A DNA stretch of 64,000 bases, taken from NCBI GenBank assembly GCA_964057225.1, contig OZ059894.1, positions 5,828,001 through 5,892,000 on the forward strand, given 5' to 3'. Position numbers and translations under genes: made by a program. The notes beneath the pieces were generated by a model. That model ran no database searches. It saw nothing but the letters and a program-made list of their open reading frames with translations, and had not been told where the DNA came from. The stretch is from Auanema rhodensis. Its lineage: Eukaryota; Animalia; Nematoda. Each line of letters begins with the position of its first letter. Within the stretch, counting starts at the first letter, position 1. Shown piece after piece: positions 21,001-63,381 of the stretch.

Positions 21001-23194
21001 ATATTTTATATTGTATTCAATCTATATTCCTCATAATTTTACATTACATACAACCAATTCTTCTATCTTTCTTTTCTTTTCTTCAACTTCCTTTTCATCT
21101 ATATTACCTCCTTCCTCTTACTTCATCTGTGAGCTTTCTTTTCCTCTTCTCGTTGAAGTTCTTTCCTGAAAATGAAACCACAAAAAACAATTAATGCTTT
21201 TGGCTACTCTTTGATCATGATTTTATTCAAATTCTCATTGGTTTAAGTAAAAGTCGATCATAATAGAACTTATCATGAAATGTGAAAGTTGGCATGTACT
21301 AGCTACACATTACGATCATTGGTGTGGCACCTAGCTAATGTTTGGATGATATTTCTTAGAGAAGTAGTTTTTTGCTTTCTAATGTCATAAATGTTTGATG
21401 TGATAACATGCTTCTCATCATTTCATGATCATCAACCCATACAACATCGACACATAGAGATACATTTGTTCTTTTCACATCTTTCGTTATTCTTTCTAAC
21501 TTCACCATCCAGTTCATCAAATACTTGTCGCTAACCCTCTTCACATATTTCCGTAACATCTAGAGCAACTTATATTGCCTCTTTCTTCATATCTCGTTAT
21601 CTCATCTTTGCCAAACAGTTATTTCACAAAACATATTGTTATTATTTGAAAAACGAGATCATGAATTGGCAGAGAAAATTGTGAAAATTAGATTTTCACC
21701 CAAAGAAATTCCTGCACAGCTCTAGATATTGCTCGTTTCTCCCTTCTTCTATTTTCAATACTCAGCCCATCATTCTCATTCAGCAACCCTGTCCGCTTGT
21801 CTATCTCTTTCTGATTGGAATAAAGGGACGTTTGGAGACAACGCTGACAACGAAAGGACGGCCCTACCGGATAAGCTAAACCATAGTATATGAAACATCT
21901 ATTCATATTTTACATCCAAATCATATAGTGATAACTAAACTGTATTTTTTTAATTATCTACTCTTTTAATTTTTCTAATTTTTTCTCAACTATCATAATC
22001 ATATCCGAACTTTTTTCGAACCATTTCATTTTTTAAGACAAAATATTATTACAGATAAAAATCTATTATTTCCATTGGAATGTATAATATTAATCGTTGT
22101 TATTTAAGAAAACAATTATTATACCGAAATCAGTTCTATCTTGCTTCGATATTTTATGCATTCATGTTAAATCATTCAAGCTTTAGGATTTGAGCTAATT
22201 GTTCATGTCAACGTTTTTTCATCAAACATATAGAGACATGCATACGTATAGATATATGCACCCAGGAAAAGGAATAGGAATATCGAGAGAAAGAAAAGCA
22301 AACGAGAGATAGAAAGAAGAAAGCATGAAAGAAAGGGGGATATTCAGAGGATTATACAAAAAATAGAAATATAATGCGTGTGAAAATACAATGAGGAACT
22401 TTAAGATTTACATGTTTTCTATAAAAATAATGAAGTAAAACTGTAAAATTATTATTGATATTATATATTTTATTTTTTCATATATTTTTTATTTTTCATG
22501 CTCAAATAATATTATCAATTTTTGAAAATAATTTGTACTTGTTTCTTGTTTCCGAACTTCATTCATATGCCTGAGCTCGAAATTTCCCACATACTTATGA
22601 TTTTAAATACGTTTTCTAGTTCTCTTTATTTCTCTATACTTCTCTATTGTTCTATTGATATGCTTTTGTCGTCTTATTTTAAAATTTCTTTTTGCTCGAA
22701 AATCAAGTTGTCATACTGCTAATAAGGATGAATCTGTGCTTACTCACAAATTTTTTTCTACTTTCCATGCTTTTTCATCCCCTGGCTCTACTTTTATACA
22801 TCCTATTCGTATGTACCTCCCCTTCTATCTTTTTCTTCTTGTTCCTTTCTTCAAAATCTCGCATGTATATCTCAAAAGCCTATTTTCTAATAATTTTTCT
22901 ACCAAAATCATTGTTCCACATATCATTGATTCAGAAAACTAATTTCAATTTATTAATTGCAGTTTCTTCCAAATTCTTCCAAAGTTTTAAATTACAGCTT
23001 CAATAACCTCCCCAATGTCCGGTTAAATTTTCTTGAAACGTTTTAAATTTCCCATGATTATGACATCTTTGCAAACCAATCTTGACTTTCAACTAAGAAT
23101 ATTTTTTCATTGTTGTCTTTACATCTTATTTCAACCTAAATGCACCGCCTGAGAAAAACATAATTTTCCTTTTTTCCAGATTTTCAATGCTATA

Positions 23195-37664: not shown

Positions 37665-38961
37665 ATGAAAACTATTTTTTTTCTACTTGCCGTCGCAACT
37701 CTAGCTTCAGCACAATTCGGTTGGGGAGGTAAGCAATTAACTGATGTTCGTAAAAATTATTTTGACTCAAAAACGAAAATTTCTTTTCCGAAAAATTATT
37801 TTTCCGAGAGAATCACATCCAATTTTTTTTACTACTTTTCAAGAAATAATATTTTTCAGGATTCGGATACAAACCTTGGGGTGGCCATCGTGAGTTTTGA
37901 TTTCAGTCTATCTTAATCTTTTCTACATTTCATCCATAGTTAATGTAAAATAGTCAAATTATTTTAGACGGATGGTATAGTGGAGGAGCAGATAGATACT
38001 GGGGCCGTGGATTTGGAGGATGGGACAGTCATCACAATGGTAGAGATGGATTTGGTCGCGGAAACTTTGACAATGAAAACACTGGATCAAATCGTGGAGA
38101 CAACGGAGGATTCGGTAGCCAACAAGGTGGTGGACGTGGTGGATTTGGAGGAAGCGGAGGAAACGGTGGTCGTGGTCCACAGGGACCTGGAGGACAGTCT
38201 GGAGGTTGGGACAGTCAAGGATCTCAGCAAGGTGGATGGAACAACCAAGGAGGATCCCAATCAGGATGGAATGACCAAGGAAGTTCTTCATCCGGAGGAT
38301 GGAATAGCCAAGGAGGTTCCCAATCTGGAGGAAGAAACGGTGGACGCCAAGGTTCCCAATCTGGAGGATGGAACAGTGGAAACCAAGGATCTCAAACTGG
38401 TGGATGGGGAGGAAGCCAAGGCTCTCAATCTGGAGGATGGAACAGTGGAAACCAAGGATCTCAAACTGGTGGATGGGGAGGAAGCCAAGGTTCTCAATCT
38501 GGAGGATGGACCAGTGGAAACCAAGGATCTCAAACTGGTGGATGGGGAGGAAGCCAAGGATCTCAAACTGGTGGATTGGGAAACGATGGAACTCAATCTG
38601 GAGGATGGGGTGGCCAAGGATCACCACGTAAGTTTCTCATTAATGAAATCATTAACCAATCACATGAATTACAGAAGATATGCGATCTGGAGGACGTAGA
38701 GGTTAGAAAATCATTTCTTAATTTCTTATTTTATCATTATGAATGATAGAAAGGTTAATCAAATTGTGAAAATATTTTTGGGGATACCTTTGTGTCGATG
38801 AAAACATAAGACATATGGCCTTGCTATTTGAAACGTAGTAGGGAAAAATTGATAACATTGCTTTCAAGAAGAAACAATTTTTGTAAAAAAGTTTTGAAAG
38901 TTCAAAAAATGCTTCACAATTTATTCTTTTATTTACAGGTGCTCCAGCTCCAATTCAATAG
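37665..38961 (+). CDS. Secreted Gly/Gln/Ser/Trp-rich low-complexity (prion-like, GGW-repeat) protein, ~258 aa
   Basis: Exons 37665-37728, 37860-37889, 37968-38627, 38939-38961. Signal peptide MKTIFFLLAVATLASA|QFGWGG; body consists of QGSQ[ST]GGW repeats; ends RAPAPIQ*. The true frame differs from ORF-track call 37980..38699. Confidence 0.88.
38348..38554 (+). repeat. Coding tandem repeat, 69-bp unit x3 (QGSQSGGWNSGN-QGSQTGGWGGS)
   Basis: Units start at 38348, 38417 and 38486, flanked by degenerate copies. Confidence 0.9.
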
Positions 38962-39833
38962 ACAGTCTACGCTCAGACTATGAATTTGTTGTAATTATTA
39001 TATTATTCTTGAAAAAAATGCAAGAATGAATAAATATTAATTTTTTTATTTAAATGTTTATTATAATGAAACGATTACAAAAAAGTAAAACTGAAAAACA
39101 TTATTTGAAAATATGCCAAAAATACATATGAGTTTACAAACATATATATATTCCTAAGACAGATGAATAAGTTACTTCCTTATTTCTTATTCGATTTTAT
39201 AACTATGCTAAAATTTTAAGTTTTTAATGATTTATTATTATAATAAATTATAAAATAAACAGTTAAACTATTTTACTTTTAATTAATTTTAGAAAACTGT
39301 ATTTATTCATTTCTAATCTTTGCCATGTGCTTCGAAACGATTGATGAGGTGATTGTTTTTACAGTCCAAAACTTGAAGAAAAATAGAAAATTAAAAAGTT
39401 TTATCTTATAACTTGAAAAAATATTTAAATAAAGTAATATTATTTCATATTTATGTGGTTAAAATATCCGGTTATTCTAATATACTAATCAAATTAATTT
39501 GAAAACGGGGTAGAGTTGCAATATGCGGTCTCGAAATCAAGATTTTGTTCAGAAAATGCTAGGTACTAGTGTCGTCATGTTACACCGTGACCTCTTCGTT
39601 AAGGAGCGTATGAAAAAGAGTGTGAAAGAAAGAAAGAAAAGGAGTGAAAATATGAGAGAGCGAGAGTTGAGAGAAAAAGAAAAAAAGAAAGAGAGTAGGA
39701 AATAGAAATAAAGCGTTGGGTATCAAGAAAAACGATGAAATAGAATGAAAAGTAGAAAGCAAGTTTTTAACCAAACTGTCTTGGAAGTTCTTTTAAAAGG
39801 AGAAGTGAGTCTGAAATTTTCTTTCAGAACAAA

Positions 39834-40590
39834 ATGAGATTTCTCCTTTTGTTGTTAGTTGTGATCTCCTTTGCCGCTGCGCAATTCGGTCCTCCACCTT
39901 TTGGTAAGTATTTATTAAAAGTAAACCATTTACTGTTTTTTTCTAATTTTTAAGGACCTCGTCCTGGTTTTGGTGGATCATCATTCCACCCTGCTGACTT
40001 CCGTTCTCAAGGGGGTTTTTCGACAAATAATGGAGGGTTCTCCGGCAACGGAGGAAACGTAGGAAACCGTGGTGGATTCGGAGGCAACTCTGGTGGATTC
40101 GGAGGCAACTCTGGTGGATTTGGAGGAAACTCTGGTGGATTTGGAGGAAGTTCTGGTGGATTTGGAGGAAGCTCTGGAGGACGTGGTGGAAGCTCTGATA
40201 ACTTCGGAGGACGTGGTGGATTCGGAGGAAGCTCTGGAGGACGTGGTGGAAGCTCTGATAACTTCGGAGGTCGTGGTGGTAGCTCGGGAGGAAACTTTGG
40301 AGGTCGTGGTGGAAGCTCAGACAATTTTGGAAACCGTGGTGGAAGCTCAGATAACTTCGGAGGTCGTGGTGGTAGCTCAGGAGGAAGCTTTGGAGGTCGT
40401 GGTGGAAACTCTGGAAGCTCAAATGGAGGCAGCTTCGGTGGACGTGGTGGCCCCCCTACCCCAAGTAATTAATTCATCTAATTTCAATTTTCAAAACTTT
40501 AAATAATATATTTCATTACATCTTATTTCAGGCCCTGGAATCGGTATTGCTCATCACGTTCTCACTGGTCTGTTCGGAACTGGCCGTTAA
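39834..40590 (+). CDS. Secreted glycine-rich protein (GGFGG/RGG repeats; GRSP-like), ~212 aa
   Basis: Starts tttcag|aacaaaATG. Exons 39834-39903, 39955-40464, 40532-40590. Signal MRFLLLLLVVISFAAA|QFGPPPFG; 21-bp GGFGG[NS]S repeats, then GGRGGSSDNF repeats; ends PSPGIGIAHHVLTGLFGTGR*. Confidence 0.88.
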
Positions 40591-43946: not shown

Positions 43947-46900
43947 ATGCCAATGTTAAGCCAGCCTTCCGATACTGAAAGCGAACACGACGACTTGGGA
44001 TCTATTCGACCTACTCTTAACGACGTAAGTAATATATAATTTCGATAAATAAAATATTTTCTTGCTAAACAAAAATCAGAAAGAAAAAGATAAAAATTTA
44101 TGGAAAAGGTTGAATGAAATTTATATCTTTTCATTTACAAAGACGAACAATTCAGTAAATATTTTTTTTTTTTCAAAAAAATGTTCTTTATATCAAGAAA
44201 CAGGATTAATTGTAGTAAAACATGAGAGAGACGAGCTATATACAAACTCTCGCCATTCTATGTATGCTTTTTTTCTCGTAAAGAAAACCAGTTATTGATG
44301 TACAATAAGAAAAAAAACCATTTAATATTTTAGCTTATCTTTTTGTCTTTTGCCGGAAGTTAATAAACAAAACAAACAGCTTTTTTTCTTTCTCTCAACC
44401 TCCGAATGCCTTATCTGTGCTTTCTTGTAATATATTCTTTGATTTATTTATTCAATCTATAAAAATCAATAAAAAAACTATTGCATGAAGACTCTTTTAA
44501 ATTTACAAAATTAAACTTTTACTGTTTCTTTTTCCGTTTTTTTTGGGGAAATACTGATCGGCTGATTGCCTTTCCTGAGTTAATGAGAATTCTACAGGGT
44601 ATTGATCACACGTCTCACAATCATGTTACACAGAAAGATTTAACCAAATAAAAAAGCAAAACGGTGAAGTTTTGTAAAAATGTGAAAAAACTCTCAGGTT
44701 TTGAACAAATCGCCAGTCTCAGCCAATCCTTCATATTGCACTTTCTCACACCAGTACTATACAAATTCATCTTAGTCTTCATCAGCTTCACGATGATCAA
44801 CCGTTAATAATGTTTCTTCAACTTTCTATTTCAAATACTTTTTGTTTTCTTTTCAATTGAAATTTCTGCTTTTCATTCTACTATCTCTGTTTTTCTTTCA
44901 TTCTCTCAGTTTTCCATTCTATCTGACGATCAACTTTCTTGTGGCAATTTGTATTATATTTCTTACCAATTTTCTACGCAATAAAAGTATTTTAAATAAA
45001 AAACAGAATCTATATAACTATTACTTTAATTTACAAAACTTTTATTGACAAAAAATAGCATTTTCCCTCTTACTTAGGTTGTTCTGGCCCTGACGTTACC
45101 ACCGAGTGCGTTAGCCCTCTGCGTTTGGATGCCTAAGCGACGTCGTGAGCGAATACTTGAAGTTACTAAAACTATCACTATCACTGAGATAGCTGATACG
45201 CTACCCCGAATTCTCCAAGATGGGGCTAAGGTTCGTTGAACTTTTTTTCTTGGTTTTCGATCTGCCATTTATCGCAACCGTACTTTAGCATACCGTAACG
45301 AATGTTGAGCTGGGCAATGGTCATCCAGTTACCGTACATATTAGTCAGACAACGGATCAATTCGAAGAATCAGAATGTCCGGAAAAATCAAAATTCTCCG
45401 AATATATAGATAACAAACCGTTGATTAATTGTGATGATGAAGATATTGTGGAGACGGTACATACAATAAATGAGAAGTTTATTCAGCTTCCTGATCTTAC
45501 TGGAAGCAGCATTGTTAAACAGCATGACGGTTTAGCTGATAATGTCATTGATATCAGCTTCCGTACCTCAAGTAATGACTTATAACTACTATATAGAAAT
45601 TGAATCATTTCAATTCAGAAAATCAGCTCAACAAATCTGCAACCAGCAAGAAATCAAATGTGTCAGCATATTTCAAGCCATCACGGTCATTAGATGTACT
45701 TCTATTATCACCCACAGATACAGGATTCTATACTTCTCCGAATAGGTCAGTGGCCATTATGCACTATTAGCTTTAGCTTCCATGATATGTCTTCAACCAG
45801 TTCCATATTTTTTCAGTCAAAATATTAAAAAAAATAATGAGAAAAGACATTGCTTCATATAGGAGAAAACTAAACAAAGAATAGCATTATTTTGTTTAAA
45901 AAAATTTTTTTTTACACTTACCATTCACATTTGAAATTTATAACCATAAATTTTTTTTTTTGGCTACATCAGACGAAAGTTTGGAAGAATGTAAGTTGAT
46001 TGATTGAAGCAAATAGACATGGTATTCATAACACCAATGTTCTTTTCTTCATGATCATTCATTTCAGTCAATACCATCCCATCCCCTCTCTCTTTCATAT
46101 CTTATAACATGCTGCTACGCATTTTCTCTGAACTATTCATCATTTAATTTTCTCATTTTTTAGGTGTAAAAATTTAATTTTTGACTTTAATTTCACTGTG
46201 ACTTTTAAAAAAGTTTTGAAGGAAAAAAGTTAAAGTTATTCTTAATTTAAATTAAAAACATATTATTCTCATTTGTCTCAAATATCTATATAATATTAAT
46301 TATTTTGCAAATTTTAGAATATTTGTTTCATTTTATTTTTATTTTATAGATCTGGTTTAGTGGATGGTACTGAAAGTGATGGAAGTATGATTATTCACAC
46401 AGATGATGAAAGAAGGCTTGACAGCGGTGTATCTTCTGTTAATGGCATTCAGATAAGAGGGTGAGCTTCAAGGTTTTTGATTCAATTTTCGTTTTTTTAT
46501 AAATGTGATAAAAAATAAAATGTATCAAATATATTTGAGGAATAACTCGTTGTCTGGAGGAAGAAGACGACTGGTTCCTCTAAGCTCTGATGACGATAAT
46601 GATGATTTGATTTATTTGCCTTCGATTCCGACGACGTCAGCTACACTGCCACGCTCATCACGAAAAAAGTAAACTTAGTATATAGTTCAGACAAAAACTA
46701 ATGTTTTATCTATTTATATCTGTATATGTACACAACACAACTATTAATTACCGTTGGTTTTTATTTATATTTTTCTTATAGAAAGCGATGCGGTAGACGA
46801 TATATTGTGACTTCGTTAACAAAGTCACAATCTAATCCGGCAATATATCATTCATACGTAAAATATCATCCTTGTTTACAGTATTGAAATTTAATATTTC

Positions 46901-49900
46901 AGAGGTTTCCTGAATCCAACAGAACTCAGCAAGAACAGAAAAGATCAGCAGAATATAATAATAGAACAAGATCTCATTCTGAACGGTATGGAGAGCAGGC
47001 ACAAGAAAATGGTAAATAATTGATAATCTTTTGAACAATATAATTTATTTTTTAGACAATACGCACCATAGATCTCATTTATATATCCAAAATTCTGCTA
47101 TGCCATCGCATACATATACGGTTACTTCAGTTACTGAAACGGTTCGAGAAGGTAATGAAAAAGTATTCAAACATTCAAATATATTTTAGTATCATTAACT
47201 ATAATCATAACAAATCGAAATATTAAAAAAACAATATAACTTCTACTGGTTGTTGTACTAATGATATACAACATTATAGGAAATGCAATCAGAAAGTTTA
47301 AATTATAATCAAACAATTGAATTTTTTCAGATCAAACAAAAGATGATCGTGATAAACATGATTTATCAATTCATAAGATAACCGTAGATTTAGAACTAGA
47401 TAGAGTTAATGATACCGAATCACGGATCAATGAGATTATACGGATTGAAAACGTAATTTTTCCAATTAATCACACAAATTTTTATAAATATTTAGGTTTG
47501 CGAAAATGATATTATTCCTCCAAACATGACATCAACTCCATTATCTACGTTAGAAAAAGCTAGAAAGCGCAGTTATAAAATGTAAAAACAATATTATAAA
47601 TCTTATAAAATTATAATTTTTAGAAATCATGGTGTTAGTATTGTTACAACAGATGAGAATATACAAGTTCAAGTTAGTAGCTCAGATGACTATCTGGTAT
47701 ACAATTTGTTTTATTACTATATAAATATGATTGAATTTAAGAAGGCTCCAAATGTTACACGCGGGTCACTATCACCAATTGTCGTTGTTAATCAGGATCG
47801 CTCCCGGAAGGGTAGCACTGACAACTTAGGTACATTTCCTAGAGAAGTTAGAAGAAAGAGTACGGTGACCGATATTGATTGGTTTGCAGCATTCAACATG
47901 AAGGTTTGTTAATGTTTTGTGACTTATTTTCGGAAATCAATTGATTAAGGAACCAATTACTCCAAGATCACCTAGAAGTCCATTACCTATTGATGTTTTG
48001 AAGGAGAGTGAGAACATAATTTTGGATAAACATTGTTATAACAGAAAGTAATATTACAGTTTACTAAGAACAGAACTAATTTGATTTTTACAGTGTTCCG
48101 TTATCCAAAATTACGGTTGAAGATATTTTTAGATGTAACAACTCAAGAAAACAGCAAGAGCATCCATGTTATTGTTCAGCATGCAAATTATCCAAAATGT
48201 CCGACGAGGTATCCCTTATATACATACTCAGCTTCAACCAAAATCTTAGGAACTCAAAGCCATACTTGAGAAAAAAATGAGAGCTACAAATGAACAACTA
48301 TATGTTTATCCAGAAGATAATACTCATGACGACAATCAGAGAACTACAACTTCTCACACCACAATTGAATTTCAGAACGGTAACAACGATAAAGCTACGT
48401 CATCTGTAGTACAGGATTATCTGAACCAAACAGCCCCAGAACAACCTCATCAACCGGATCCATCTCCTTTGGACATCTCAATGGATGATGTTTTCACAGA
48501 AGGCTCTGAGCCATCAACTTCTGGAAATCGTCACGCTATTGATTTGGACAAGTATGTTCAAAGGAGCCGTGATATGCAAGCTCATTCCGGAGAACAAGGA
48601 TTCACTACCTATGTCCAAAGAGAGGAGAAGCCTGATGTTTCAACACGAGTATCAACTTTGCCAGAAGCCGATGTTAGTGTTGATGACGTCTTCAATCCGA
48701 CACCACCAAAGAGAGTTCAACCTTCTTCTGATACCACAGTTCTCTTGAAGAAATCGCAACAACCTACTGTGTCTACTGAGAAACGGTCGATTGAACCAAC
48801 CTATCCAACTATTGAAACATCCACTCTTGACATCTCAATGGATGCTGTTTTCACAGAAGGCTCTGAGCCATCAACTTCTGGAAATCGTCACGCTATTGAT
48901 TTGGACAAGTATGTTCAAAGGAGCCGTGATATGCAAGCTCATTCCGGAGAACAAGGATTCACTACCTATGTCCAAAGAGAGGAGAAGCCTGATGTTTCAA
49001 CACGAGTATCAACTTTGCCAGAAGCCGATGTTAGTGTTGATGACGTCTTCAATCCGACACCACCAAAGAGAGTTCAACCTTCTTCTGATACCACAGTTCT
49101 CTTGAAGAAATCCCAACAACCTGCTGTGTCCACTGAGCATCGCCCGATTGAACCAACCTATCCAACTATTGAAACATCCACTCTTGACATCTCAATGGAT
49201 GATGTTTTCACAGAAGGCTCTGAGCCATCAACTTCTGGAAATCGTCACGCTATTGATTTGGACAAGTATGTTCAAAGGAGCCGTGATATGCAAGCTCATT
49301 CCGGAGAACAAGGATTCACTACCTATGTCCAAAGAGAGGAGAAGCCTGATGTTTCAACACGAGTATCAACTTTGCCAGAAGCCGATGTTAGTGTTGATGA
49401 CGTCTTCAATCCGACACCACCAAAGAGAGTTCAACCTTCTTCTGATACCACAGTTCTCTTGAAGAAATCGCAACAACCTACTGTGTCTACTGAGAAACGG
49501 TCGATTGAACCAACCTATCCAACTATTGAAACATCCACTCTTGACATCTCAATGGATGCTGTTTTCACAGAAGGCTCTGAGCCATCAACTTCTGGAAATC
49601 GTCACGCTATTGATTTGGACAAGTATGTTCAAAGGAGCCGTGATATGCAAGCTCATTCCGGAGAACAAGGATTCACTACCTATGTCCAAAGAGAGGAGAA
49701 GCCTGATGTTTCAACACGAGTATCAACTTTGCCAGAAGCCGATGTTAGTGTTGATGACGTCTTCAATCCGACACCACCAAAGAGAGTTCAACCTTCTTCT
49801 GATACCACAGTTCTCTTGAAGAAATCCCAACAACCTGCTGTGTCCACTGAGCATCGCCCGATTGAACCAACCTATCCAACTATTGAAACATCCACTCTTG

Positions 49901-52900
49901 ACATCTCAATGGATGATGTTTTCACAGAAGGCTCTGAGCCATCAACTTCTGGAAATCGTCACGCTATTGATTTGGACAAGTATGTTCAAAGGAGCCGTGA
50001 TATGCAAGCTCATTCCGGAGAACAAGGATTCACTACCTATATCCAAAAAGAGGAGAAGCCAGATGCTTCAACACGAGTATCAACTTTGCCAGAAGCCGAT
50101 GTTAGTGTTGATGACGTCTTCAATCCAACACCACCGAAGAGAGTTCAATCTTCTTCTGATACCACAGTTCTCTTGAAGAAATCCCAACAACCTGCTGTGT
50201 CCACTGAGCATCGCCCGATTGAACCAACCTATCCAACTATTGAAACATCCACTTTTGACATCTCAATGGATGATGTTTTCACAGAAGGCTCTGAGCCATC
50301 AACTTCTGGAAATCGTCACGCTATTGATTTGGACAAGTATGTTCAAAGGAGCCGTGATATGCAAGCTCATTCCGGAGAACAAGGATTCACTACCTATGTC
50401 CAAAGAGAGGAGAAGCCTGATGTTTCAACACGAGTATCAACTTTGCCAGAAGCCGATGTTAGTGTTGATGACGTCTTCAATCCAACACCACCGAAGAGAG
50501 TTCAACCTTCTTCTGATACCACAGTTCTCTTGAAGAAATCCCAACAACCTGCTGTGTCCACTGAGCATCGCCCGATTGAACCAACCTATCCAATTATTGA
50601 AACATCCACTCTTGACATCTCAATGGATGATGTTTTCACAGAAGGCTCTGAGCCATCAACTTCTGGAAATCGTCACGCTATTGATTTGGACAAGTATGTT
50701 CAAAGGAGCCGTGATATGCAAGCTCATTCCGGAGAACAAGGATTCAATACCTATGTCCAAAAGGAGGAGAAGCCAGATGCTTCAACACGAGTATCAACTT
50801 TGTCAGAAGCCGATGTTAGTGTTGATGACGTCTTCAATCCGACACCACCAAAGAGAGTTCAACCTTCTTCTGATACCACAGTTCTCTTGAAGAAATCCCA
50901 ACAACCTGCTGTGTCCACTGAGCATCCCACATTTGAACCAACCTATCCTACTGCTGAAACATCCACTCTTGACATCTCAATGGATGATGTTTTCACAGAA
51001 GGTTCTGAGCCATCAACTTCTGGAAATCGTCACGCTATTGATTTGGACAAGTATGTTCAAAGGAGCCGTGATATGCAAGCTCATTCCGGAGAACAAGGAT
51101 TCACTACCTATATCCAAAAGGAGGAGAAGCCAGATGCTTCAACACGAGTATCAACTTCGCCAGAAGCCGATGTTAGTGTTGATGACGTCTTCAATCCAAC
51201 ACCACCGAAGAGAGTTCAACCTTCTTCTGATACCACAGTTCTCTTGAAGAAATTCCAACAACCTGCTGTGTCCACTGAGCATCGCCCGATTGAACCAACC
51301 TATCCAACTATTGAAACATCCACTCTTGACATCTCAATGGATGATGTTTTCACAGAAGGCTCTGAGCCATCAACTTCTGGAAATCGTCACGCTATTGATT
51401 TGGACAAGTATGTTCAAAGGAGCCGTGATATGCAAGCTCATTCCGGAGAACAAGGATTCACTACCTATGTCCAAAGAGAGGAGAAGCCTGATGTTTCAAC
51501 ACGAGTATCAACTTTGCCAGAAGCCGATGTTAGTGTTGATGACGTCTTCAATCCGACACCACCAAAAAGAGTTCAATCTTCTTCTGATACCACAGTTCTC
51601 TTGAAGAAATCCCAACAACCTGCTGTGTCCACTGAGCATCGCCCGATTGAACCAACCTATCCAACTATTGAAACATCCACTCTTGACATATCAATGGATG
51701 ATGTTTTCACAGAAGGCTCTGAGCCATCAACTTCTGGAAATCGTCACGCTATTGATTTGGACAAGTATGTTCAAAGAAGCCGTGATATGCAAGCTCATTC
51801 CGGAGAACAAGGATTCAATACCTATGTCCAAAAGGAGGAGAAGCCAGATGCTTCAACACGAGTATCAACTTTGTCAGAAGCCGATGTTAGTGTTGATGAC
51901 GTCTTCAATCCGACACCACCAAAGAGAGTTCAACCTTCTTCTGATACCACAGTTCTCTTGAAGAAATCCCAACAACCTGCTGTGTCCACTGAGCATCGCC
52001 CGATTGAACCAACCTATCCAATTATTGAAACATCCACTCTTGACATCTCAATGGATGATGTTTTCACAGAAGGCTCTGAGCCATCAACTTCTGGAAATCG
52101 TCACGCTATTGATTTGGACAAGTATGTTCAAAGGAGCCGTGATATGCAAGCTCATTCCGGAGAACAAGGATTCACTACCTATGTCCAAAGAGAGGAGAAG
52201 CCTGATGTTTCAACACGAGTATCAACTTTGCCAGAAGCCGATGTTAGTGTTGATGACGTCTTCAATCCGACAACACCAAAAAGAGTTCAATCTTCTTCTG
52301 ATACCACAGTTCTCTTGAAGAAATCCCAACAACCTGCTGTGTCCCCTGAGCATCGCCCGATTGAACCAACCTATCCAACTATTGAAACATCCACTCTTGA
52401 CATATCAATGGATGATGTTTTCACAGAAGGCTCTGAGCCATCAACTTCTGGAAATCGTCACGCTATTGATTTGGACAAGTATGTTCAAAGGAGCCGTGAT
52501 ATGCAAGCTCATTCCGGAGAACAAGGATTCAATACCTATGTCCAAAAGGAGGAGAAGCCAGATGCTTCAACACGAGTATCAACTTTGTCAGAAGCCGATG
52601 TTAGTGTTGATGACGTCTTCAATCCGACACCACCAAAGAGAGTTCAACCTTCTTCTGATACCACAGTTCTCTTGAAGAAATCCCAACAACCTGCTGTGTC
52701 CACTGAGCATCCCACATTTGAACCAACCTATCCTACTGCTGAAACATCCACTCTTGACATCTCAATGGATGATGTTTTCACAGAAGGTTCTGAGCCATCA
52801 ACTTCTGGAAATCGTCACGCTATTGATTTGGACAAGTATGTTCAAAGGAGCCGTGATATGCAAGCTCATTCCGGAGAACAAGGATTCACTACCTATGTCC

Positions 52901-55900
52901 AAAGAGAGGAGAAGCCTGATGTTTCAACACGAGTATCAACTTTGCCAGAAGCCGATGTTAGTGTTGATGACGTCTTCAATCCGACACCACCAAAGAGAGT
53001 TCAACCTTCTTCTGATACCACAGTTCTCTTGAAGAAATCCCAACAACCTGCTGTGTCCACTGAGCATCGCCCGATTGAACCAACCTATCCAACTATTGAA
53101 ACATCCACTCTTGACATATCAATGGATGATGTTTTCACAGAAGGCTCTGAGCCATCAACTTCTGGAAATCGTCACGCTATTGATTTGGACAAGTATGTTC
53201 AAAGGAGCCGTGATATGCAAGCTCATTCCGGAGAACAAGGATTCAATACCTATGTCCAAAAGGAGGAGAAGCCAGATGCTTCAACACGAGTATCAACTTT
53301 GTCAGAAGCCGATGTTAGTGTTGATGACGTCTTCAATCCGACACCACCAAAGAGAGTTCAACCTTCTTCTGATACCACAGTTCTCTTGAAGAAATCCCAA
53401 CAACCTGCTGTGTCCACTGAGCATCCCACATTTGAACCAACCTATCCTACTGCTGAAACATCCACTCTTGACATCTCAATGGATGATGTTTTCACAGAAG
53501 GCTCTGAGCCATCAACTTCTGGAAATCGTCACGCTATTGATTTGGACAAGTATGTTCAAAGGAGCCGTGATATGCAAGCTCATTCCGGAGAACAAGGATT
53601 CACTACCTATGTCCAAAAGGAGGAGAAGCCAGATGCTTCAACACGAGTATCAACTCTGCCAGAAGCCGATGTTAGTGTTGATGACGTCTTCAATCCGACA
53701 CCACCAAAGAGAGTTCAATCTTCTTCTGATACCACAGTTCTCTTGAAGAAATCCCAACAACCTGCTGTGTCCACTGAGCATCGCCCGATTGAACCAACCT
53801 ATCCAACTATTGAAACATCCACTCTTGACATCTCAATGGATGATGTTTTCACAGAAGGCTCTGAGCCATCAACTCCTGGAAATCGTCACGCTATTGATTT
53901 GGACAAGTATGTTCAAAGAAGCCGTGATATGCAAGCTCATTCCGGAGAACAAGGATTCACTACCTATGTCCAAAGAGAGGAGAAGCCTGATGTTTCAACA
54001 CGAGTATCAACTTTGCCAGAAGCTGATGTTAGTGTTGATGACGTCTTCAATCCAACACCACAGAAGAGAGTTCAACCTTATTCTGATACCACAGTTCTCA
54101 GAAAGAAATCGCAACAACCTACTGTGTCTACTGAGAAACGGTCGATTGAACCAACCTATCCAACTATTGAAACATCCACTCTTGACATCTCAATGGATGA
54201 TGTTTTCACAGAAGGCTCTGAGCCATCAACTTCTGAAAATCGTCACGCTATTGATTTGGACAAGTATGTTCAAAGAAGCCGTGATATGCAAGCTCATTCC
54301 GGAGAACAAGGATTCACTACCTATGTCCAAAGAGAGGAGAAGCCTGATGCTTCAACTCGAGTATCAACTTTGCCAGAAGCCGATGTTAGTGTTGATGACG
54401 TCTTCAATCCAACACCACCGAAGAGAGTTCAACCTTCTTCTGATACCACAGTTCTCTTGAAGAAATCCCAACAACCTGCTGTGTCCACGGAGCATCGCCC
54501 GATTGAACCAACCTATCCAATTATTGAAACATCCACTCTTGACATCTCAATGGATGATGTTTTCACAGAAGGCTCTGAGCCATCAACTTCTGGAAATCGT
54601 CACGCTATAGATTTGGACAAGTATGTTCAAAGAAGCCGTGATATGCAAGCTCATTCCGGAGAACAAGGATTCACTACCTATGTCCAAAGAGAGGAGAAGC
54701 CTGATGCTTCAACTCGAGTATCAACTTTGCCAGAAGCCGATGTTAGTGTTGATGACGTCTTCAATCCAACACCACCGAAGAGAGTTCAACCTTCTTCTGA
54801 TACCACAGTTCTCTTGAAGAAATCCCAACAACCTGCTGTGTCCACTGAGCATCGCCCGATTGAACCAACCTATCCTACTGCTGAAACATCCACTCTTGAC
54901 ATCTCAATGGATGATGTTTTCACAGAAGGCTCTGAGCCATCAACTTCTGGAAATCGTCACGCTATAGATTTGGACAAGTATGTTCAAAGAAGCCGTGATA
55001 TGCAAGCTCATTCCGGAGAACAAGGATTCACTACCTATGTCCAAAGAGAGGAGAAGCCTGATGTTTCAACACGAGTATCAACTTTGCCAGAAGCCGATGT
55101 TAGTGTTGATGACGTCTTCAATCCGACACCACCGAAGACAGTTCAACCTTCTTCTGATACCACAGTTCTCTTGAAGAAATCCCAACAACCTGCTGTGTCC
55201 ACTGAGCATCGCCCGATTGAACCAACATATCCAATTATTGAAACATCCACTCTTGACATCTCAATGGATGATGTTTTCACAGAAGGCTCTGAGCCATCAA
55301 CTTCTGGAAATCGTCACGCTATAGATTTGGACAAGTATGTTCAAAGAAGCCGTGATATGCAAGCTCATTCCGGAGAACAAGGATTCACTACCTATGTCCA
55401 AAGAGAGGAGAAGCCTGATGTTTCAACACGAGTATCAACTTTGCCAGAAGCTGATGTTAGTGTTGATGACGTCTTCAATCCAACACCACCGAAGAGAGTT
55501 CAACCTTCTTCTGATACCACAGTTCTCTTGAAGAAATCGCAACAACCTACTGTGTCTACTGAGAAACGGTCGATTGAACCAACCTATCCAACTATTGAAA
55601 CATCCACTCTTGACATCTCAATGGATGCTGTTTTCACAGAAGGCTCTGAGCCATCAACTTCTGGAAATCGTCACGCTATAGATTTAGACAAGTTTGTTCA
55701 AAGGAGCCGTGATATGCAAGCTCATTCCGGAGAACAAGGTTTCACTACCTATGTCCAAAGAGAGGAGAAGCCTGATGCTTCAACTCGAGTATCAACTTTG
55801 CCAGAAGCCGATGTTAGTGTTGATGACGTCTTCAATCCGACACCACCAAAGAGAGTTCAATCTTCTTCTGATACCACAGTTCTCTTGAAAAAATCCCAAC

Positions 55901-58900
55901 AACCTGCTGTGTCCACTGAGCATCGCCCGATTGAACCAACCTATCTAACTATTAAAACATCCACTCTTGACATCTCAATGGATGATGTTTTCACAGAAGG
56001 CTCTGAGCCATCAACTTCTGGAAATCGTCACGCAATAGATTTGGACAAGTATGTTCAAAGAAGCCGTGATATGCAAGCTCATTCCGGAGAACAAGGATTC
56101 ACTACCTATGTCCAAAAGGAGGAGAAGCCAGATGCTTCAACACGAGTATCAACTTTGCCAGAAGCCGATGTTAGTGTTGATGACGTTTTCAATCCAACAC
56201 CACAGAAGAGAGTTCAACCTTGTTCTGATACCACAGTTCCCTGGAAGAAATCCCAACAACCTGCTGTGTCCACTGAGCATCGCCCGATTGAACCAACCTA
56301 TCCAACTGCTGAAACATCCACTCTTGACATCTCAATGGATGATGTTTTCACAGAAGGCTCTGAGCCATCAACTTCTGGAAATCGTCACGCAATAGATTTG
56401 AACAAGTATGTTCAAAGAAGCCGTGATATGCAAGCTCATTCCGGAGAACAAGGATTCACTACCTATGTCCAAAGAGAGGAGAAGCCTGATGTTTCAACAC
56501 GAGTATCAACTTTGCCAGAAGCTGATGTTAGTGTTGATGACGTCTTCAATCCAACACCACCGAAGAGAGTTCCACCTTCTTCTGATACCACAGTTCTCTT
56601 GAAGAAATCTCAACAACCTGCTGTGTCCACTGAGCATCGCCCGATTGAACCAACCTATCCAACTGCTGAAACATCCACTCTTGACATCTCAATGGATGAT
56701 CTTTTCACAGAAGGCTCTGAGCCATCAACTTCTGGAAATCGTCACGCAATAGATTTGGACAAGTATGTTCAAAGAAGCCGTGATATGCAAGCTCATTCCG
56801 GAGAACAAGGTTTCACTACCTATGTCCAAAAGGAGGAGAAGCCAGATGCTTCAACACGAGTATCAACTTTGCCAGAAACTGATGTTAGTGTTGATGACGT
56901 CTTCAATCCGACACCACCAAAGAGAGTTCAATCTTCTTCTGATACCACAGTTCTCTTGAAGAAATCCCAACAACCTGCTGTGTCCACTGAGCATCGCCCG
57001 ATTGAACCAACCTATCCAACTGCTGAAACATCCACTCTTGATATCTCAATGGATGATGTTTTCACAGAAGGCTCTGAGCCATCAACTTCTGGAAATCGTC
57101 ACGCTATAGATTTAGACAAGTATGTTCAAAGAAGCCGTGATATGCAAGCTCATTCCGGAGAACAAGGATTCACTTCCTATGTCCAAAGAGAGGAGAAGCC
57201 TGATGTTTCAACACGAGTATCAACTTTGCCAGAAGCCGATGTTAGTGTTGATGACGTCTTCAATCCAACACCACCAAAGAGAGTTCAACCTTCTTCTGAT
57301 ACCACAGTTCTCTTGAAGAAATCCCAACAGCCTGCTGTGTCCACTCAGCATCCCACATTTGAACCAACCTATCCTACTGCTGAAACATCCACTCTTGACA
57401 TCTCAATGGATGATGTTTTCACAGAAGGCTCTGAGCCATCAACTTCTGGAAATCGTCACGCTATTGATTTGGACAAGTATGTTCAAAGAAGCCGTGATAT
57501 GCAAGCTCATTCCGGAGAACAAGGATTCACTACCTATGTCCAAAGAGAGGAGAAGCCTGATGTTTCAACACGAGTATCAACTTTGCCAGAAGCCGATGTT
57601 AGTGTTGATGACGTCTTCAATCCAACACCACCAAAGAGAGTTCAACCTTCTTCTGATACCACAGTTCTCTTGAAGAAATCCCAACAGCCTGCTGTGTCCA
57701 CTCAGCATCCCACATTTGAACCAACCTATCCTACTGCTGAAACATCCACTCTTGACATCTCAATGGATGATGTTTTCACAGAAGGCTCTGAGCCATCAAC
57801 TTCTGGAAATCGTCACGCTATAGATCTAGACAAGTATGTTCAAAGGAGCCGTGATATGCAAGCTCATTCCGGAGAACAAGGTTTCACTACCTATGTCCAA
57901 AGAGAGGAGAAGCCTGATGTTTCAACACGAGTATCAACTTTGCCAGAAGCCGATGTTAGTGTTGATGACGTTTTCAATCCAACACCACCAAAGAGAGTTC
58001 AACCTTCTTCTGATACCACAGTTCTCTTGAAGAAATCCCAACAACCTGCTGTGTCCACTGAGCATCCCACATTTGAACCAACCTATCCTACTGCTGAAAC
58101 ATCCACTCTTGACATCTCAATGGATGATGTTTTCACAGAAGGCTCTGAGCCATCAACTTCTGAAAATCGTCACGCTATAGATTTAGACAAGTATGTTCAA
58201 AGGAGCCGTGATATGCAAGCTCATTCCGGAGAACGAGGTTTCACTACCTATGTCCAAAGAGAGGAGAAGCCTGATGTTTCGACACGAGTATCAACTTTGC
58301 CAGAAGCTGATGTTAGTGTTGATGACGTCTTCAATCCAACACCACCGAAGAGAGTTCAACCTTCTTCTGAGACTATAGTTTTTTCGAAGGAACCCACTGA
58401 GATTGTCGTTGATGACATTTTTAGTCCGATCGCACCCCAAGCTCTCGATGTTACTTCTGATTCTTTCGGGTTTGATGTAGTTGATAAAACAGAAATGAAA
58501 AAGTTATCACTCCCAACTCCTCCCAACTCACCTATTGGATCTCCGAAAAATATTTCTTTCGAGTTGTCAACAGTACGAGATAATACTACTGATGCTTCTG
58601 TTGGTTCACTTTCTGACAAAAACGATTTTGTATTATTATCTGATGGTTTGTTTTGTTTAATTTTTCTTATTGTTCATTAGCAATTTTTCAGAAAATTCGG
58701 AGAATAGATTACGATCACGTTCTGTTACCTCACTGAATCGTAAAAAAGTTTTCACAGTCACTTTTTCTTCCGAGTCTTCGGATCATTCGCCGGCTGGGAT
58801 TGAAAATACGGATCATGAAAGACCAGAAGCCACAAGAAAAATTAGAAAACCACCCCCTCCGGTAGATAGAACAAGCTTGTTCGATGTATTTCATCTTAAT

Positions 58901-61900
58901 TCGGAGAACCAAACTGTACGACCATCAGCTAGTTCTGGTCATATGTTGAATACCCCAAGTATTCATTCAGTGGAAGAAAAGTTGTATCTTGATGACTCTT
59001 TAGAAAGTTATAACTCTTTGCAAACTACTCCACACATAATGAGTTATGAATATCAGCCTATTATTACTGAAATTCATGCAACATCGCTTACAGTTTCATT
59101 AGATGAGTTAAATGAGAATCTTAAGAAAACTGACAGAATAATAAAAGATTCTCATGTTATACCATCAACTGCATATGAAGAAGTCAAAAATGGAAATGGT
59201 TATAATAGTCGTAGAGCTTCTCGATATTCTATTCGCACTGATGAATTAGACGTAGATGATATCATGCCCATTCCACCGCCTCGCAAACAAACACCGTTTT
59301 CAACAAACTTTTCCGATTATTACAACGATCTCAAATCTCCACCAAGAACACCATTAAAAATAAAAAGAAGGTAAGTAATTTTTTTCATTTTTCAATAATT
59401 TATTGCGTTTTTAGAAGCATAGATTTCTTCTATGAAGAACCATTTGAAATGCCAATAGAAGAAGAAGTAGATGTTGAAGATTTCGTTGACGAAATTCTTA
59501 ATCAATCTCTGGATGAAGCAGCATTTTATGCATCGTCAAAACATTTACCGTCCAGAAATAAAGGTTTCATTTTGCCTATATCATAGTTATTAATCTTTGT
59601 TTAGCTCTGCGTTCGACAGATACTTCTATCGATCGTAAACAATCGGAAACAACCAATTCAGAAACAGTAAATTATGAGATCGGAACTAGTTCTGATCCAC
59701 CATCGTATGAGCAAAGCCAAAAAGATGAACATTTGTTCATTTCGTCAGCAAATAGGTTTGTTAATATGAAAACTTTGATTTTTTACGATTTAGTGGTTTC
59801 AGAGATTCGTTATATGAAGCTGTTCTAGCTTATCCAAATTCTGATATAATAACAATCAAAGATTCTAGACAGTTAGTGTCAGTAGTCTCAATTTTATTAT
59901 TGAAAAATATTTAGAACATTCATCGAACCCTCAGAGGAAGTTGATTATAGCTCTGAAGGAAAACCTCATACTTACATCAGTGAAGCTACAGTAGTTATGA
60001 AAGAAAGTACACCGCCGGACAGCTACTATGTTCGTCTCGTGTTTCCTGAAAATCAAAAAGATGAGAAAGTAAGACCATTTTCAATTTATTTATTTTATTA
60101 CAAAACAGGTTCTCATTTTTCAAAATTTATACTTTTTTTGTATTTAAAAACCGAAACACTTTAAAAAAGTTATATAAAAAACTATATTTCAGTTCTCATC
60201 AAAAGTCTAGTTTCTCTTTTTAATTTGTTGACAATTTTTTTAAAACAACAATTTGGAACAAAAAAGTTATTTTTCTTTCTTTAATTCGGATACTTATTGC
60301 AGCAAATATCAATAACACAACAAACTTCTGATATAATATCGACTGAAACAACTGAATCTTATCAATTTAATGAGCGCAACTCTGAGGTCAAAACAAATGA
60401 TATAAAACACTTTGTTGAAAAGGTAGTTATACAAACTTAACATGACTAAATAATATAATTAATTATTCTTTTTTTTTATTTTCTTAATTGTTCTCTCACT
60501 TGATTAGCAGAATCTAAATCAATACATATAGTTAATGTATTTTCAGATGATTCCTCAACAGAAAGACGATGAATTTTTGGAAATTGAATCTAACTCTGAG
60601 TATTTCATTATTCACGGAAAATATTCTATGATCATTCATAAAGTAATAATTTAAATATAATTCATCATATATTTTAATTAATTTCAGACTGAACCATTAG
60701 GAGAAATGCTTTCTAAAATACAGACTAGTAGCTTAGATTTTACTGTAACTCCGAAGCTTCGAAGAATTTTGAGACAATGTCTCCAGAACAAAATTTCTGG
60801 AAACACTGGTATATAATAAACAAACTTTGTTTTTTTCATTTTCTGATTTTAGGAACAGATATATCCTCGAGAGCACTCCATATGCTTGATCGGCCTGATC
60901 CAGCATATGAAGTATACTATGAAATGGCATCCAATCGCTACAGCCCGACCAATATTATGGTTAGAAAACTAGAACTTAATTCATATACTAAGTTTGTATT
61001 TTGCAGGGTAATATCAATTTTTGCACAGCCGAGATTATGATTTGTAAGCCATTGTTACGAGACAGACTTTCCAAAAGTATGAACATAGTGGAAGATCATA
61101 TGTTCCATTATGGCCCAGGAGGTGGATATGATGAGTACGTTCTTTCAAAAATACTTCTTTATAACTTTCAAATTACAGAGTTAAAGATGTTTTCTTACAA
61201 TACCTTAAGAAGTTCATGAATGCAAGTCATGTTTTACGTCAAAATTTGACGTTTGTTGGATCCGGAAATACAGCTTATGATCTCATCAGTCATTGCATAT
61301 TTGAAGCGGATGGTTAGAGAAATTTCATTTCAAATCAAATGTAACTATTTCAGATGTTCTGCTTATTAATACACCCACATATGCAAGAGTTTTTGTTAAC
61401 TGTGAAGAGCGTGCTTCATGTCGAGTTGAGCCTGTGCCGGTATAAAGCATTTTTCGAAAATATTATTTGTTTTTTATTTCAGATGGATTTGAGTAAACTG
61501 GAAATTGATATTTCGTCATTTGAAAAAGTTTTAACAGAGCAATCAGAAAAGGTTTGATTGATTCTAAAATTTATTTGTATCAATAATTATGATAACTACT
61601 TTAAGGGTAGTAATGTACGGGGAGTTGTTCTCATCAATCCCAGTAACCCACTTGGAATTACTTTCCCTAAACAGCAAGTTTTAGAATTAGGCAATTGGGC
61701 TGCTAGGTATTTGTTTTCTTTTTAGTTATAACTTTAGAAATTATGTTTATAGACATGATTTAACACTTATCGTGGATGAATCGTTTTCGGGTTCCAATCA
61801 TGGTTCAAGAGAATGTGAGTCCTTCCTATCATATCAACATGAACTCAATAATCCATCTAAAGCCGCATGGTTCTGGAGCTTATCCAAGGTGATATTCAAT

Positions 61901-62646
61901 AAATAATATATTCTTAGTTTGAAACTTTTTTTTCTAGGACTTTGGCTTACCTGGCGTTAAGATCAGTGTAATCCATACACCAAACCAATATTTGAAAGAA
62001 GCACTATCGACCTTGGGATTAATTTTCCCTGTTTCCTCACTGGCTGAAGATTTCGCTTCAAATCTTTTATCTGATTTTGGTTAGTGAAATATTTGATCGA
62101 TTAATATAAGTTTTTAACATTTTCAGATTTTGTTTCAAATTTCCATGAAACTAAAAATCAGCGCATTCACTCACATTACAAATTTGTAATTAGAAATCTA
62201 GAAGCACTAAATCTCAACTATATTACAGCTACTTCCGGATTTTTTGTTCTTGTTGATTTCAGACAGGTAATAGTAGAAATTGTTTTTTTATATTTATATG
62301 TTATACCTATATATTCTTACTTTTAGAAATTAAATGCTCCTACTTTTGAAGAGGAAACAAAGTTATGGCACAAACTAATTTCTCATGGATTATACCTGAC
62401 AAGAGGGAAAGATATGAGATGTTCTGAACCAGGATGGATGCGTCTTGTCTTTGGTTGCGATAAAGAACAAGTCGAAGAAGGTAAACAGTTATTTTTCTTC
62501 TGTTAACCAGAAAAAAATCCTTAATACTTTAATAATTTTAAAAAATCGTTCATGTTTTATCTATTAGTTTTATCTTTTCAGGAATCAGAAGGCTACATAG
62601 CGTTTTTGGTTCAACCACATCTGTGCTTGGCTCTATTGAGTACTAG
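43947..62646 (+). CDS. Giant (~5000 aa, ~36 exons) disordered repeat protein with C-terminal class I/II PLP aminotransferase (ACC synthase/ACCS-like) domain
   Basis: A continuous phase-compatible GT-AG exon chain runs from 43947 (start codon tentative) through 45078, 45289, 45619, 46350 and on to 48133, the giant exon 48250-58645, then 58692-59370 and on to TAG 62644-62646. ACS-family motifs: GNINFCTAE (61007), INPSNPLG (~61633), LIVDESF (~61766), WSLSK|DFGLPG (PLP Lys codon 61886-61888), GFFVLVDF, EPGWMRLVF. From memory the architecture resembles C. elegans T04F3.1; not verified. Confidence 0.85.
48472..58369 (+). repeat. Coding tandem array: 357-bp (119-aa) unit, ~27.7 copies, within one 10,396-nt exon
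   Basis: The ATG of DISMDDVF recurs at 48481+357n for n=0..27 (last at 58120), so there are no net indels. The reading frame is uninterrupted and the array is visibly more GC-rich than the flanks. Confidence 0.98.
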
Positions 62647-63381
62647 ATTGGAGATAAATATTAGAATTAATTATTATTTTAATAGTGTAAAATAAAATGT
62701 TCATATTCGTTCATATTTGTATTACCTTTAAGTTATCGTTCTCCTTCATGTTCTATCATTTTTCATAGTTTTCATATACATATATCCACACAAAATGAAG
62801 AATTTTCTAGCACATGGCATTCATCTTTTCATACAAAAAGTGCAATTTGGAGAAAAAAATTGATTATAAATCTTCATTTTTAATTCAAACATAACTAATT
62901 CAAATATAAATTGTTTCCTGAATATTTCGTCCTTATTCATTGGGCTGCGAAACGTTGACCACTGAAGTATGAGAGAGAAAAAAAGAGAAAGAAATTTTTG
63001 AAAGTTGCACTGATATTATACATTAATTATCTAGTTGGGAATTGAATTTAAATATTTTTCAGCTTTATTTATATATAATCTTAATTGAATCTATATTTTG
63101 TATCGTATTGTCTATACAAATTTAAATTTTAAAAAATAAGAAGAAAAAAATATTCATACCAGTAACAAATTAAAAATATTATTGCCTTTTAACCATACTG
63201 TAATAATCGAAAAAAATTCCTAATTTAAAAAATATAAAACATGACAATAATAGAGAAACTATGTTTTAGATAAAGTTTCTAAAACGAATTAAGCTTGAAT
63301 GCAAACTAAGATGTGAAGAGCGCATTGATGGCACTTGGCTCATTCAATGATTCAATTCAATGATTCTTATTGTTCCGATTT

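Follow-up and report, generated by a model that had tools for sequence, protein, structure and literature searches.

What is a giant exon filled with near-identical repeats, each carrying two DDVF-type motifs, doing in front of a metabolic-type enzyme? The question is raised by a 64-kb window (the whole stretch of DNA that was analysed) of Auanema rhodensis contig OZ059894.1, and all positions below are window coordinates. The best explanation, which we consider reasonably probable, is that the repeats are a real coding tandem array in the disordered arm of an ACCS-like pyridoxal phosphate (PLP) enzyme, that an old short linear motif (SLiM) module was amplified there, and that the arm would serve as a multivalent docking tether.

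Tandem Repeats Finder identified a single array (48472-58370; period 357, 27.7 copies, 96% matches, 0% indels) inside one open frame on the plus strand (48277-58680). Counting on the translation gave 28 units at exact 119-residue steps.

48472-58467, plus strand: tandem array of 28 units of 357 bp (119 amino acids), from repeat finding and the translation count
58399-58422, plus strand: degenerate motif EIVVDDIF directly after the array, aligned with DNSIDDIC of the related Auanema sp. JU1783

Each unit runs from motif A, (L)DISMDDVF, through a predicted helix, IDLDKYVQRSRDM, and RVST (an RxxT site) to motif B, DVSVDDVF, and a variable Pro/Ser/Thr spacer, with 66 residues from motif A to B and 53 residues from B to the next A. 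The 3' part of unit 28 is degenerate. The array contains 52 DDVF, three DAVF (units 2, 4 and 21), one DDLF (unit 24), one DDIF and 25 TPPK. An earlier note on this DNA had given the same numbers of units, DDVF, DAVF and DDLF and the same two spacings, and had placed the degenerate copies EIVVDDIF and ELDVDDIM (59243-59266) where we find them. A count of 52 DDVF is far above chance. Because the units are recent copies, however, these are not 52 independent observations, and the independent evidence therefore consists of the two motifs per unit and the orthologues. Units differ at a mean of 14 positions per 357 bp, and units 1 and 3, 2 and 4, and 12 and 14 are identical, so that the array is either young or under homogenisation. 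Across the array, 29 synonymous and 40 non-synonymous variants were counted. The ratio of non-synonymous to synonymous polymorphism (pN/pS) is approximately 0.42, and lower in the segment from motif A to motif B. The stretch DVSVDDVFNP of motif B shows zero non-synonymous variants, and most such variants are located in the spacer.

Two further kinds of signal were found on the repeat. Pfam matches (TraI_middle, Csx1_HEPN and others) were rejected, as no single stretch passes and the scores are sums of weak repeated matches. Another frame of the plus strand (48791-57673) contains 16 open reading frames (ORFs) of 104 residues with TTG starts and one of 223 residues over two units. These ORFs, 357 bp apart, are one alternative-frame stretch copied with the array and not independent genes.

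Mis-assembly could have inflated the copy number or produced the array itself. The exact 714-bp duplicates (units 1-2 equal units 3-4) are of a kind that assemblers can create, and the JU1783 assembly failed to resolve its own array, leaving 8,690 N in 10 kb. An independent DNA run argues against this explanation. In that run the summed word depth for the last unit (58100-58453) reaches 12,000-25,700 versus approximately 200 in the flanks (60-130x), where summed contig depths over-count and Logan contig depth is not taken as a quantitative copy number. In the same run, a variant present in two assembled units occurs at approximately twice the single-copy depth. Repeat-unit contigs were also found in three RNA runs, and a related species likewise has an array. 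Taken at this level, an assembly artefact is very improbable.

The array exon is fused to the enzyme. Spliced RNA contigs of approximately 3.2 kb from three runs of the same organism cover 58317-62798, and because they join the last unit in frame to the PLP exons, through to the stop, the fusion is real, as the earlier note had proposed. The 3' donor of the giant exon (58645/58646) is present in RNA contigs of all three runs. Another 19 exons follow it in frame, and the encoded protein finishes at 62646 with …GIRRLHSVFGSTTSVLGSIEY, its C-terminus being …GSIEY as in the orthologue. All listed RNA joints are GT..AG, and none is present in the DNA run; 15 listed junctions were placed on GT/AG and the others deduced uniquely from contig coordinates and reading frame. 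In all three runs the contigs begin at 58317, 30 nt left of the unit-28-specific base 58347. With k=31, a repeat boundary is expected to break the contigs at this point, which is not a 5' end. Homology and reading frame indicate that the ATG at 48277 is not the start of the protein, and three upstream exons are predicted, which reach the acceptor at 48250 in frame via GT..AG introns of 46, 46 and 41 nt. The gene is laid out as follows.

47742-47903, plus strand: predicted upstream coding exon (…SPIVVVNQ…TVTDIDWFAAFNMK), from tblastn and an in-frame GT donor; its start is a guess
47950-48047, plus strand: predicted upstream exon (EPITPRSPRSPLPIDVLKESE…), with an in-frame GT..AG join across a 46-nt intron; matches strongylid NMKEP…VDVLKEAE
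48094-48208, plus strand: predicted upstream exon with an ancestral motif copy, KITVEDIF (48110-48130), followed by CYCSAC, from homology and in-frame GT..AG joins
48250-58645, plus strand: giant exon of 10,396 nt, open throughout; acceptor TCTTAG/G predicted from frame and homology, donor in RNA contigs
58692-59370, plus strand: disordered-arm exon with RLRSRSVTS (RxRxxS), SLFDVF, RRASRYS and ELDVDDIM (59243-59266); both junctions in RNA contigs
59415-59563, plus strand: exon with conserved island EVDVEDFVDEILNQSLDEAAF, from RNA junctions and orthologue conservation
59605-59755, 59803-59871, 59915-60068, 60303-60422, 60547-60642 and 60688-60808, plus strand: six linker exons, from RNA junctions and orthologue alignment
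60853-62646, plus strand: ACC-synthase-like PLP domain in 11 exons, stop included, from RNA junctions and PF00155
60853-60959, 61007-61134, 61179-61312, 61354-61439, 61483-61551 and 61606-61706, plus strand: PLP exons 1-6
61753-61888, 61938-62079, 62127-62266, 62327-62480 and 62582-62646, plus strand: PLP exons 7-11
62647-62798, plus strand: 3' untranslated region; RNA contigs end at 62796-62798

For the upstream exons, tblastn of 47772-47903 against the Angiostrongylus and Dictyocaulus orthologues gave E-values of 3e-6 and 4e-7. Exon 48094-48208 matches KINIDDVFCENSE…KCPCSACN in Angiostrongylus and TINMNDIFC…KCSCSACN in Dictyocaulus, and its KITVEDIF…CYCSAC is the counterpart of KINIDDVFC…CPCSAC in Angiostrongylus. 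Translation from the internal ATG at 48277 gives a protein of 4,389 residues, and the partial model from 47742 gives 4,523. The RxRSRS and RRAS sites of exon 58692-59370 are kept in JU1783. The linker exons contain the islands TDTSIDRK and YVRLVFP and the conserved pre-domain stretch EYFIIHGKYSMIIHK…LDFTVTPKL.

Further 5' exons of the array gene may be located at 45129-45236 and 46780-47186 on the plus strand, as judged by eye. MPKRRRERILEVTKTITITE in these stretches resembles the Dictyocaulus start MPSEHGEQVLEVTKTVTV, and RRYIVTSLTKSQS and HTYTVTSVTETVRE resemble HKYIITSLSQSHETVR; tblastn reported no match at these two stretches.

By sequence, the C-terminal domain is an ACCS-like PLP enzyme with an intact catalytic signature. 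The ACCS-like label of the earlier note corresponds to a class I/II aminotransferase fold closest to ACC synthases. PF00155 matches the window exons with E-values of 3e-4 and 6.5e-3, of which only the former reaches the Pfam curated cutoff, and the orthologues with E-values of 1e-40 to 3e-29; the JU1783 orthologue, which is 59% identical, gave 1e-40. With the JU1783 orthologue as query, the top six PDB matches are ACC synthases (E 7e-33 to 1e-30) and the next class follows at 3.5e-18. The nearest solved structures are the plant ACC synthases 1IAX, 7DLY and 1B8G. As in the animal ACCS and plant ACC synthase family, the C-terminal approximately 430 residues match PF00155, and the SxSK lysine (Schiff-base Lys) is found in WSLSK, NPxNPLG in NPSNPLG, the PLP-binding Asp in VDESF and the GWxR arginine (carboxylate-binding Arg) in GWMRLVF. 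The domain keeps 80 of the 81 residues that are invariant across five orthologues. DESF stands here in place of the DExY of plant ACC synthases, presumably with Phe replacing the Tyr that stacks on and hydrogen-bonds to PLP. Unlike the plant enzymes, the nematode proteins bear a disordered N-terminal arm of 600-4,000 residues with conserved SLiM islands. The one exception is the Asn of FCTAEN, which is invariant in the five orthologues and Ile in Auanema rhodensis alone (FCTAEIM, 61016-61039), and the RNA contigs agree with the window.

Is the motif a product of the array, or older than it? One PLP exon was searched against 1.8 billion representatives, and orthologues with long N-terminal arms were retrieved from Auanema sp. 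JU1783, Angiostrongylus costaricensis and Dictyocaulus viviparus; those of Caenorhabditis angaria and C. brenneri were added by further searches. C. elegans T04F3.1 was not retrieved in the orthologue-seeded searches, which yielded four informative orthologues. When proteins of 1.9-6 thousand residues were queried with the tail of the giant ORF, nothing was found, and that collection contains no full-length model of the gene. In the literature, T04F3.1 is mentioned once, incidentally, and nothing was found on DDVF in nematodes. The N-terminal arms of the orthologues align poorly, yet the motif is present in each of the five.

C. brenneri: DISMDDVF twice, DISMDEIF
C. angaria: ISIDDVF, LNLEDVF, VSLDDVF
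Angiostrongylus: INIDDVF and ISLDEIF, 67 residues apart
Dictyocaulus: INMNDIF and FTLDEVF, 66 residues apart
JU1783: ISLDDVF and ITMEELF, 63 residues apart

The arms of the orthologues outside Auanema have 2-5 copies of phi-x-phi-[DE][DE][VI]F (phi, hydrophobic; x, any residue), C. angaria having 3-5, and the distance from motif A to motif B is 63-67 residues in Auanema and both strongylids. Phe is kept in all orthologue motifs and Val in motif A of Auanema and Caenorhabditis; the Val position is Ile or Leu in EELF (JU1783 motif B), DEIF, DDIF and NDIF (strongylids). The motif ranks among the top conserved islands of the arm in the orthologue alignment. Counts were also compared with 5,000 shuffles of each orthologue arm. 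For the a-priori pattern [DE][DE][VI]F, P was <0.0002 and 0.0002 in the two Caenorhabditis, 0.003 in Angiostrongylus and approximately 0.1 in the other two orthologues, each of which has one strict copy. By these results the motif is older than the array, and it is under selection. The earlier note had taken the motif to predate the expansion and to be the selected element, and both points agree with what is seen here: the arms of the five orthologues have otherwise diverged but retain motifs of the [DE][DE][VI]F type, and the array of a second species retains the motifs at approximately 30% unit identity.

Two observations on the Caenorhabditis proteins stand apart. In C. brenneri residues 1-240, a block of approximately 186 residues (…DEKIRRGIAEFEKSKQEK…ISMDDVFN) occurs twice, an independent duplication of a motif-bearing block. 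VVIDEVF (residues 830-836 of one Caenorhabditis orthologue and 752-758 of that of C. brenneri) matches the motif expression and was treated as a buried structural strand of the PLP domain and not as a SLiM. This strand carries the cofactor-binding Asp and corresponds to LIVDESF in the window, which calls for caution in motif scans.

The second array is that of Auanema sp. JU1783 (CALQYR020007247.1, 111864-122193; 10,330 bp), and the array is thus not specific to one species. The annotated JU1783 protein CAI4224826.1 starts partway through a repeat unit; this gene model is a truncated one, and the array is unassembled. In the 10 kb upstream of the annotated protein, islands of sequence alternate with scaffold gaps (8,690 N in total), and at least five further islands are all one module in one phase, with 63 residues from motif A to B, 53 from B to A and a unit of approximately 116 residues. 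The islands are 93-97% identical at the DNA level, and the last unit, which adjoins unique sequence, is more diverged. Between the two species, units are identical at 35/116 residues, of which the stretch from motif A to B contributes 29/72 and the spacer from B to A 6/44. Kept between the species are LDISxDDVF, IDxDKYxQRxR, GFxT, R-x-S-[ST]-phi-P-[DE]-A and the pattern of motif B, which reads DVSVDDVF in the window and NITIEELF in JU1783. TPPK, which the earlier note had regarded as a feature of every unit, does not hold as a conserved element, with DETKPQ at that place in JU1783. On this comparison the two arrays evolve in concert, and it is the motifs that are retained, under selection.

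The same data bear on a neutral recent expansion, in which unequal crossing-over, tolerated in a disordered region, would have left the array behind as a side effect. The number of motifs would then be incidental, and a large part of the array might be absent from the protein. The units are approximately 96% identical and include identical two-unit duplicates. An open frame needs no selection, because 357 is 3 x 119 and the units are near-identical. The motif-breaking change of D to A has itself been amplified to three units, and the spacer from B to A is nearly free to evolve between species (6/44). However, JU1783 has an array of the same architecture and is 59% identical elsewhere in the protein, so the array has persisted or recurred. 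Both motifs have survived approximately 70% unit divergence, pN/pS is approximately 0.42 and lower between motifs A and B, and the motif has multiplied independently elsewhere, in the duplicated block of C. brenneri and the 3-5 copies of C. angaria. An essentially neutral origin is judged rather unlikely, even with the strong under-representation of the array in RNA relative to DNA, described next, in its favour.

The RNA contigs show that repeat-unit sequence is transcribed and that the last unit and the PLP exons are contiguous. In the three RNA runs, the summed depth over the repeat is 8-71 versus 22-57 for the single-copy spliced contig (0.4-2.3x). The contrast with the DNA run is real, because one method was applied to both kinds of run. 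The animals from which the RNA was taken may have had fewer units.

Several points weigh against an amplified, selected docking module. The array is at least 10- to 50-fold under-represented in RNA versus DNA, which may reflect strong 3' bias of the libraries with an mRNA of at least 13.6 kb, or most transcripts may be without most of the array through an internal start or intra-repeat splicing, so that mRNA and protein may not contain all 28 units. The copy number comes from one assembly. Motif A carries two non-synonymous variants, and the change of D to A is present in three units. Over the 16 motif codons, two variants were seen versus approximately five expected, a difference that is not significant, and the motifs vary only slightly less than the rest of the array. 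The extended pattern phi-x-phi-[DEN][DE][VIL]F, with P <=0.0002 in five of five orthologues, was chosen post hoc. The AlphaFold2 (AF2) models described below are of low confidence, and their multiple alignments are shallow or absent.

AF2 was run on two units with no alignment and gave a mean predicted local distance difference test (pLDDT) score of 47.9, with short helices only at VDDVF and IDLDKYVQRSRDM (IDLDKY…). For the JU1783 orthologue, with a five-sequence alignment, residues 1-597 have pLDDT <50 and helices are predicted at LDDVF, DFDKYIQRGRE and MEELFD. The model of the full JU1783 orthologue (mean pLDDT 38) gave no signal either way on docking of the motif to its own PLP domain. The array composition, rich in S, T, P, D and E, is in line with disorder. 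Together, these predictions are suggestive of a disordered arm with motif-sized elements that could fold on binding.

Which partner might the motifs bind? In RSK, the N-terminal kinase domain has a KAKLGM (alphaG-alphaH) pocket that is bound by the sequence D/E-D/E-V-F, with V and F buried and acidic residues in the flanks (PMC8812568), and the literature thus confirms the premise from which the earlier note had started. In ORF45, V65 and F66 are buried and D63, D64 and D69 form salt bridges (PMC8789800). The core VF motif alone binds at approximately 20 uM, and an N-terminal extension increases the affinity (PMC8789800). A VF motif beside a K/RxxS/T site can speed its phosphorylation several thousand-fold. 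Among human proteins with the motif, 67/222 are predicted to dock RSK by at least one model, and approximately 12 interactors are known (PMC11984722). The 52 exact cores of the array agree with the sequence definition of the RSK VF/DDVF SLiM (PMC8812568, PMC11984722). The motifs are also located in a predicted disordered region, for which the low-confidence AF2 models are supportive only. RSK is the sole candidate partner with a documented preference for the motif sequence.

If RSK were the partner, the DDVF motifs would sit in the KAKLGM pocket of RSKN-1, the RxxS/T and RxRxxS sites would be phosphorylated, and the 56-fold array would cluster or sequester the kinase. The 52 exact D-D-V-F cores in a predicted disordered region are consistent with this, and conservation of the KAKLGM loop has been reported from C. 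elegans through to human (PMC8812568). Motif A (LDISMDDVFTEG) and motif B (DVSVDDVFNPTPP) are also similar outside the four core positions to VIDMSAPDDVFAEDTPSPPAT, the ORF45 peptide with which RSK2 binding was studied (PMC8789800). Multivalency would matter here, because single core VF motifs bind weakly (approximately 20 uM). In 28/28 units an RxxS/T site (RVST) precedes motif B by at most about 12 residues, with RRQSS or RKSS in JU1783, and the downstream RxRSRS and RRAS sites are conserved. However, the base rate is low, with 67/222 human motif proteins predicted to dock (PMC11984722). In JU1783, every motif B (EELF) has Leu in place of the buried Val, and DEIF/DDIF/NDIF of strongylids have Ile. 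The conserved phi-x-phi upstream and the helical prediction may point to a motif that is longer or of another kind, and neither the Caenorhabditis nor the strongylid orthologues conserve the RxxS/T site. An RSK docking scaffold or substrate is a plausible reading, but on balance a rather unlikely one. Other motif classes were compared by eye, and in our judgement none of SIM, clathrin box, LIR, PP2A-B56 LxxIxE, PAM2, FFAT, the AP-2 and gamma-ear acidic-Phe motifs and pLxIS fits all copies.

Compared with known RSK DDVF/VF SLiMs (TMEV L, KSHV ORF45, Yersinia YopM, SPRED2, GAB3, SOS1 and BMF), the array has the exact D-D-V-F core in a disordered acidic context. Like ORF45 56-76, it has an upstream phi-D-phi-S element and downstream acid or TP..PP, and like VF-dependent substrates it has basophilic RxxS/T sites near the motif. 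Unlike known RSK clients, which have one or two motifs, it has approximately 56 in tandem. Orthologue copies differ from the RSK DDVF definition in taking I or L at the Val position, and the host protein is a PLP enzyme, unlike the RSK clients of the RAS-ERK pathway.

Returning to the tether that we favour, the amplified unit is an old module of motif A (phi-S-phi-DDVF), a short helix, RxxS/T and motif B (phi-x-phi-[DE][DE]-phi-F). Its core phi-[DE][DE]-phi-F, with weak helical propensity, is conserved in clade V nematodes at 2-5 copies and would be a functional SLiM. In the Auanema lineage the module has multiplied to approximately 28-30 copies, or approximately 56 motifs, and the copies would be kept alike by unequal crossing-over or gene conversion. 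Many weak contacts between motif and partner would then concentrate the partner near the PLP domain, or the enzyme near the partner. We infer a protein partner for the motif and an importance of valency; the arm most likely acts as a multivalent docking tether.

Concertedly evolving coding arrays in disordered proteins likewise have units that are near-identical within a species and diverged between species, and sticker-spacer repeats likewise have short conserved motifs between spacers, which here are Pro/Ser/Thr-rich and evolve freely. Unlike general multivalent SLiM repeats, the repeat here is attached to a metabolic-type enzyme, and the repeated motif predates the array and occurs unamplified in other genera. 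The whole is best described as an SLiM module that has been amplified in tandem, evolves in concert and is attached to an orphan PLP enzyme.

Elsewhere in the window, a second repeat-rich, very acidic open frame was found at 37980-40506 on the plus strand, with repeats such as DLKLVDGEEAK.LNLEDGTVETK and LVDLEE..VD. It lies within a local rise in G+C content (0.34-0.36 versus approximately 0.29) and probably belongs to a neighbouring gene as a further repetitive coding exon.

Animal ACCS homologues are orphan enzymes, and a docking motif found across clade V would give a handle for a partner search in relatives of C. elegans. The Auanema arrays present one SLiM that is preserved while the surrounding sequence turns over under concerted evolution, and a valency that ranges from 2 to approximately 56 between genera provides a clean natural system for asking whether motif number matters. 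It is conceivable, though on balance unlikely, that the arm is an approximately 56-valent docking or substrate platform for nematode RSK or another reader of phi-x-phi-DD-V-F, tethered to an orphan PLP enzyme in a pairing conserved in clade V, including Caenorhabditis. Such a platform would be the first endogenous invertebrate client of the DDVF pocket, with a natural tuning of valency from 2 to 56. If the partner is RSK, DDVF docking, so far described from vertebrate hosts and their pathogens, would gain an endogenous invertebrate client.

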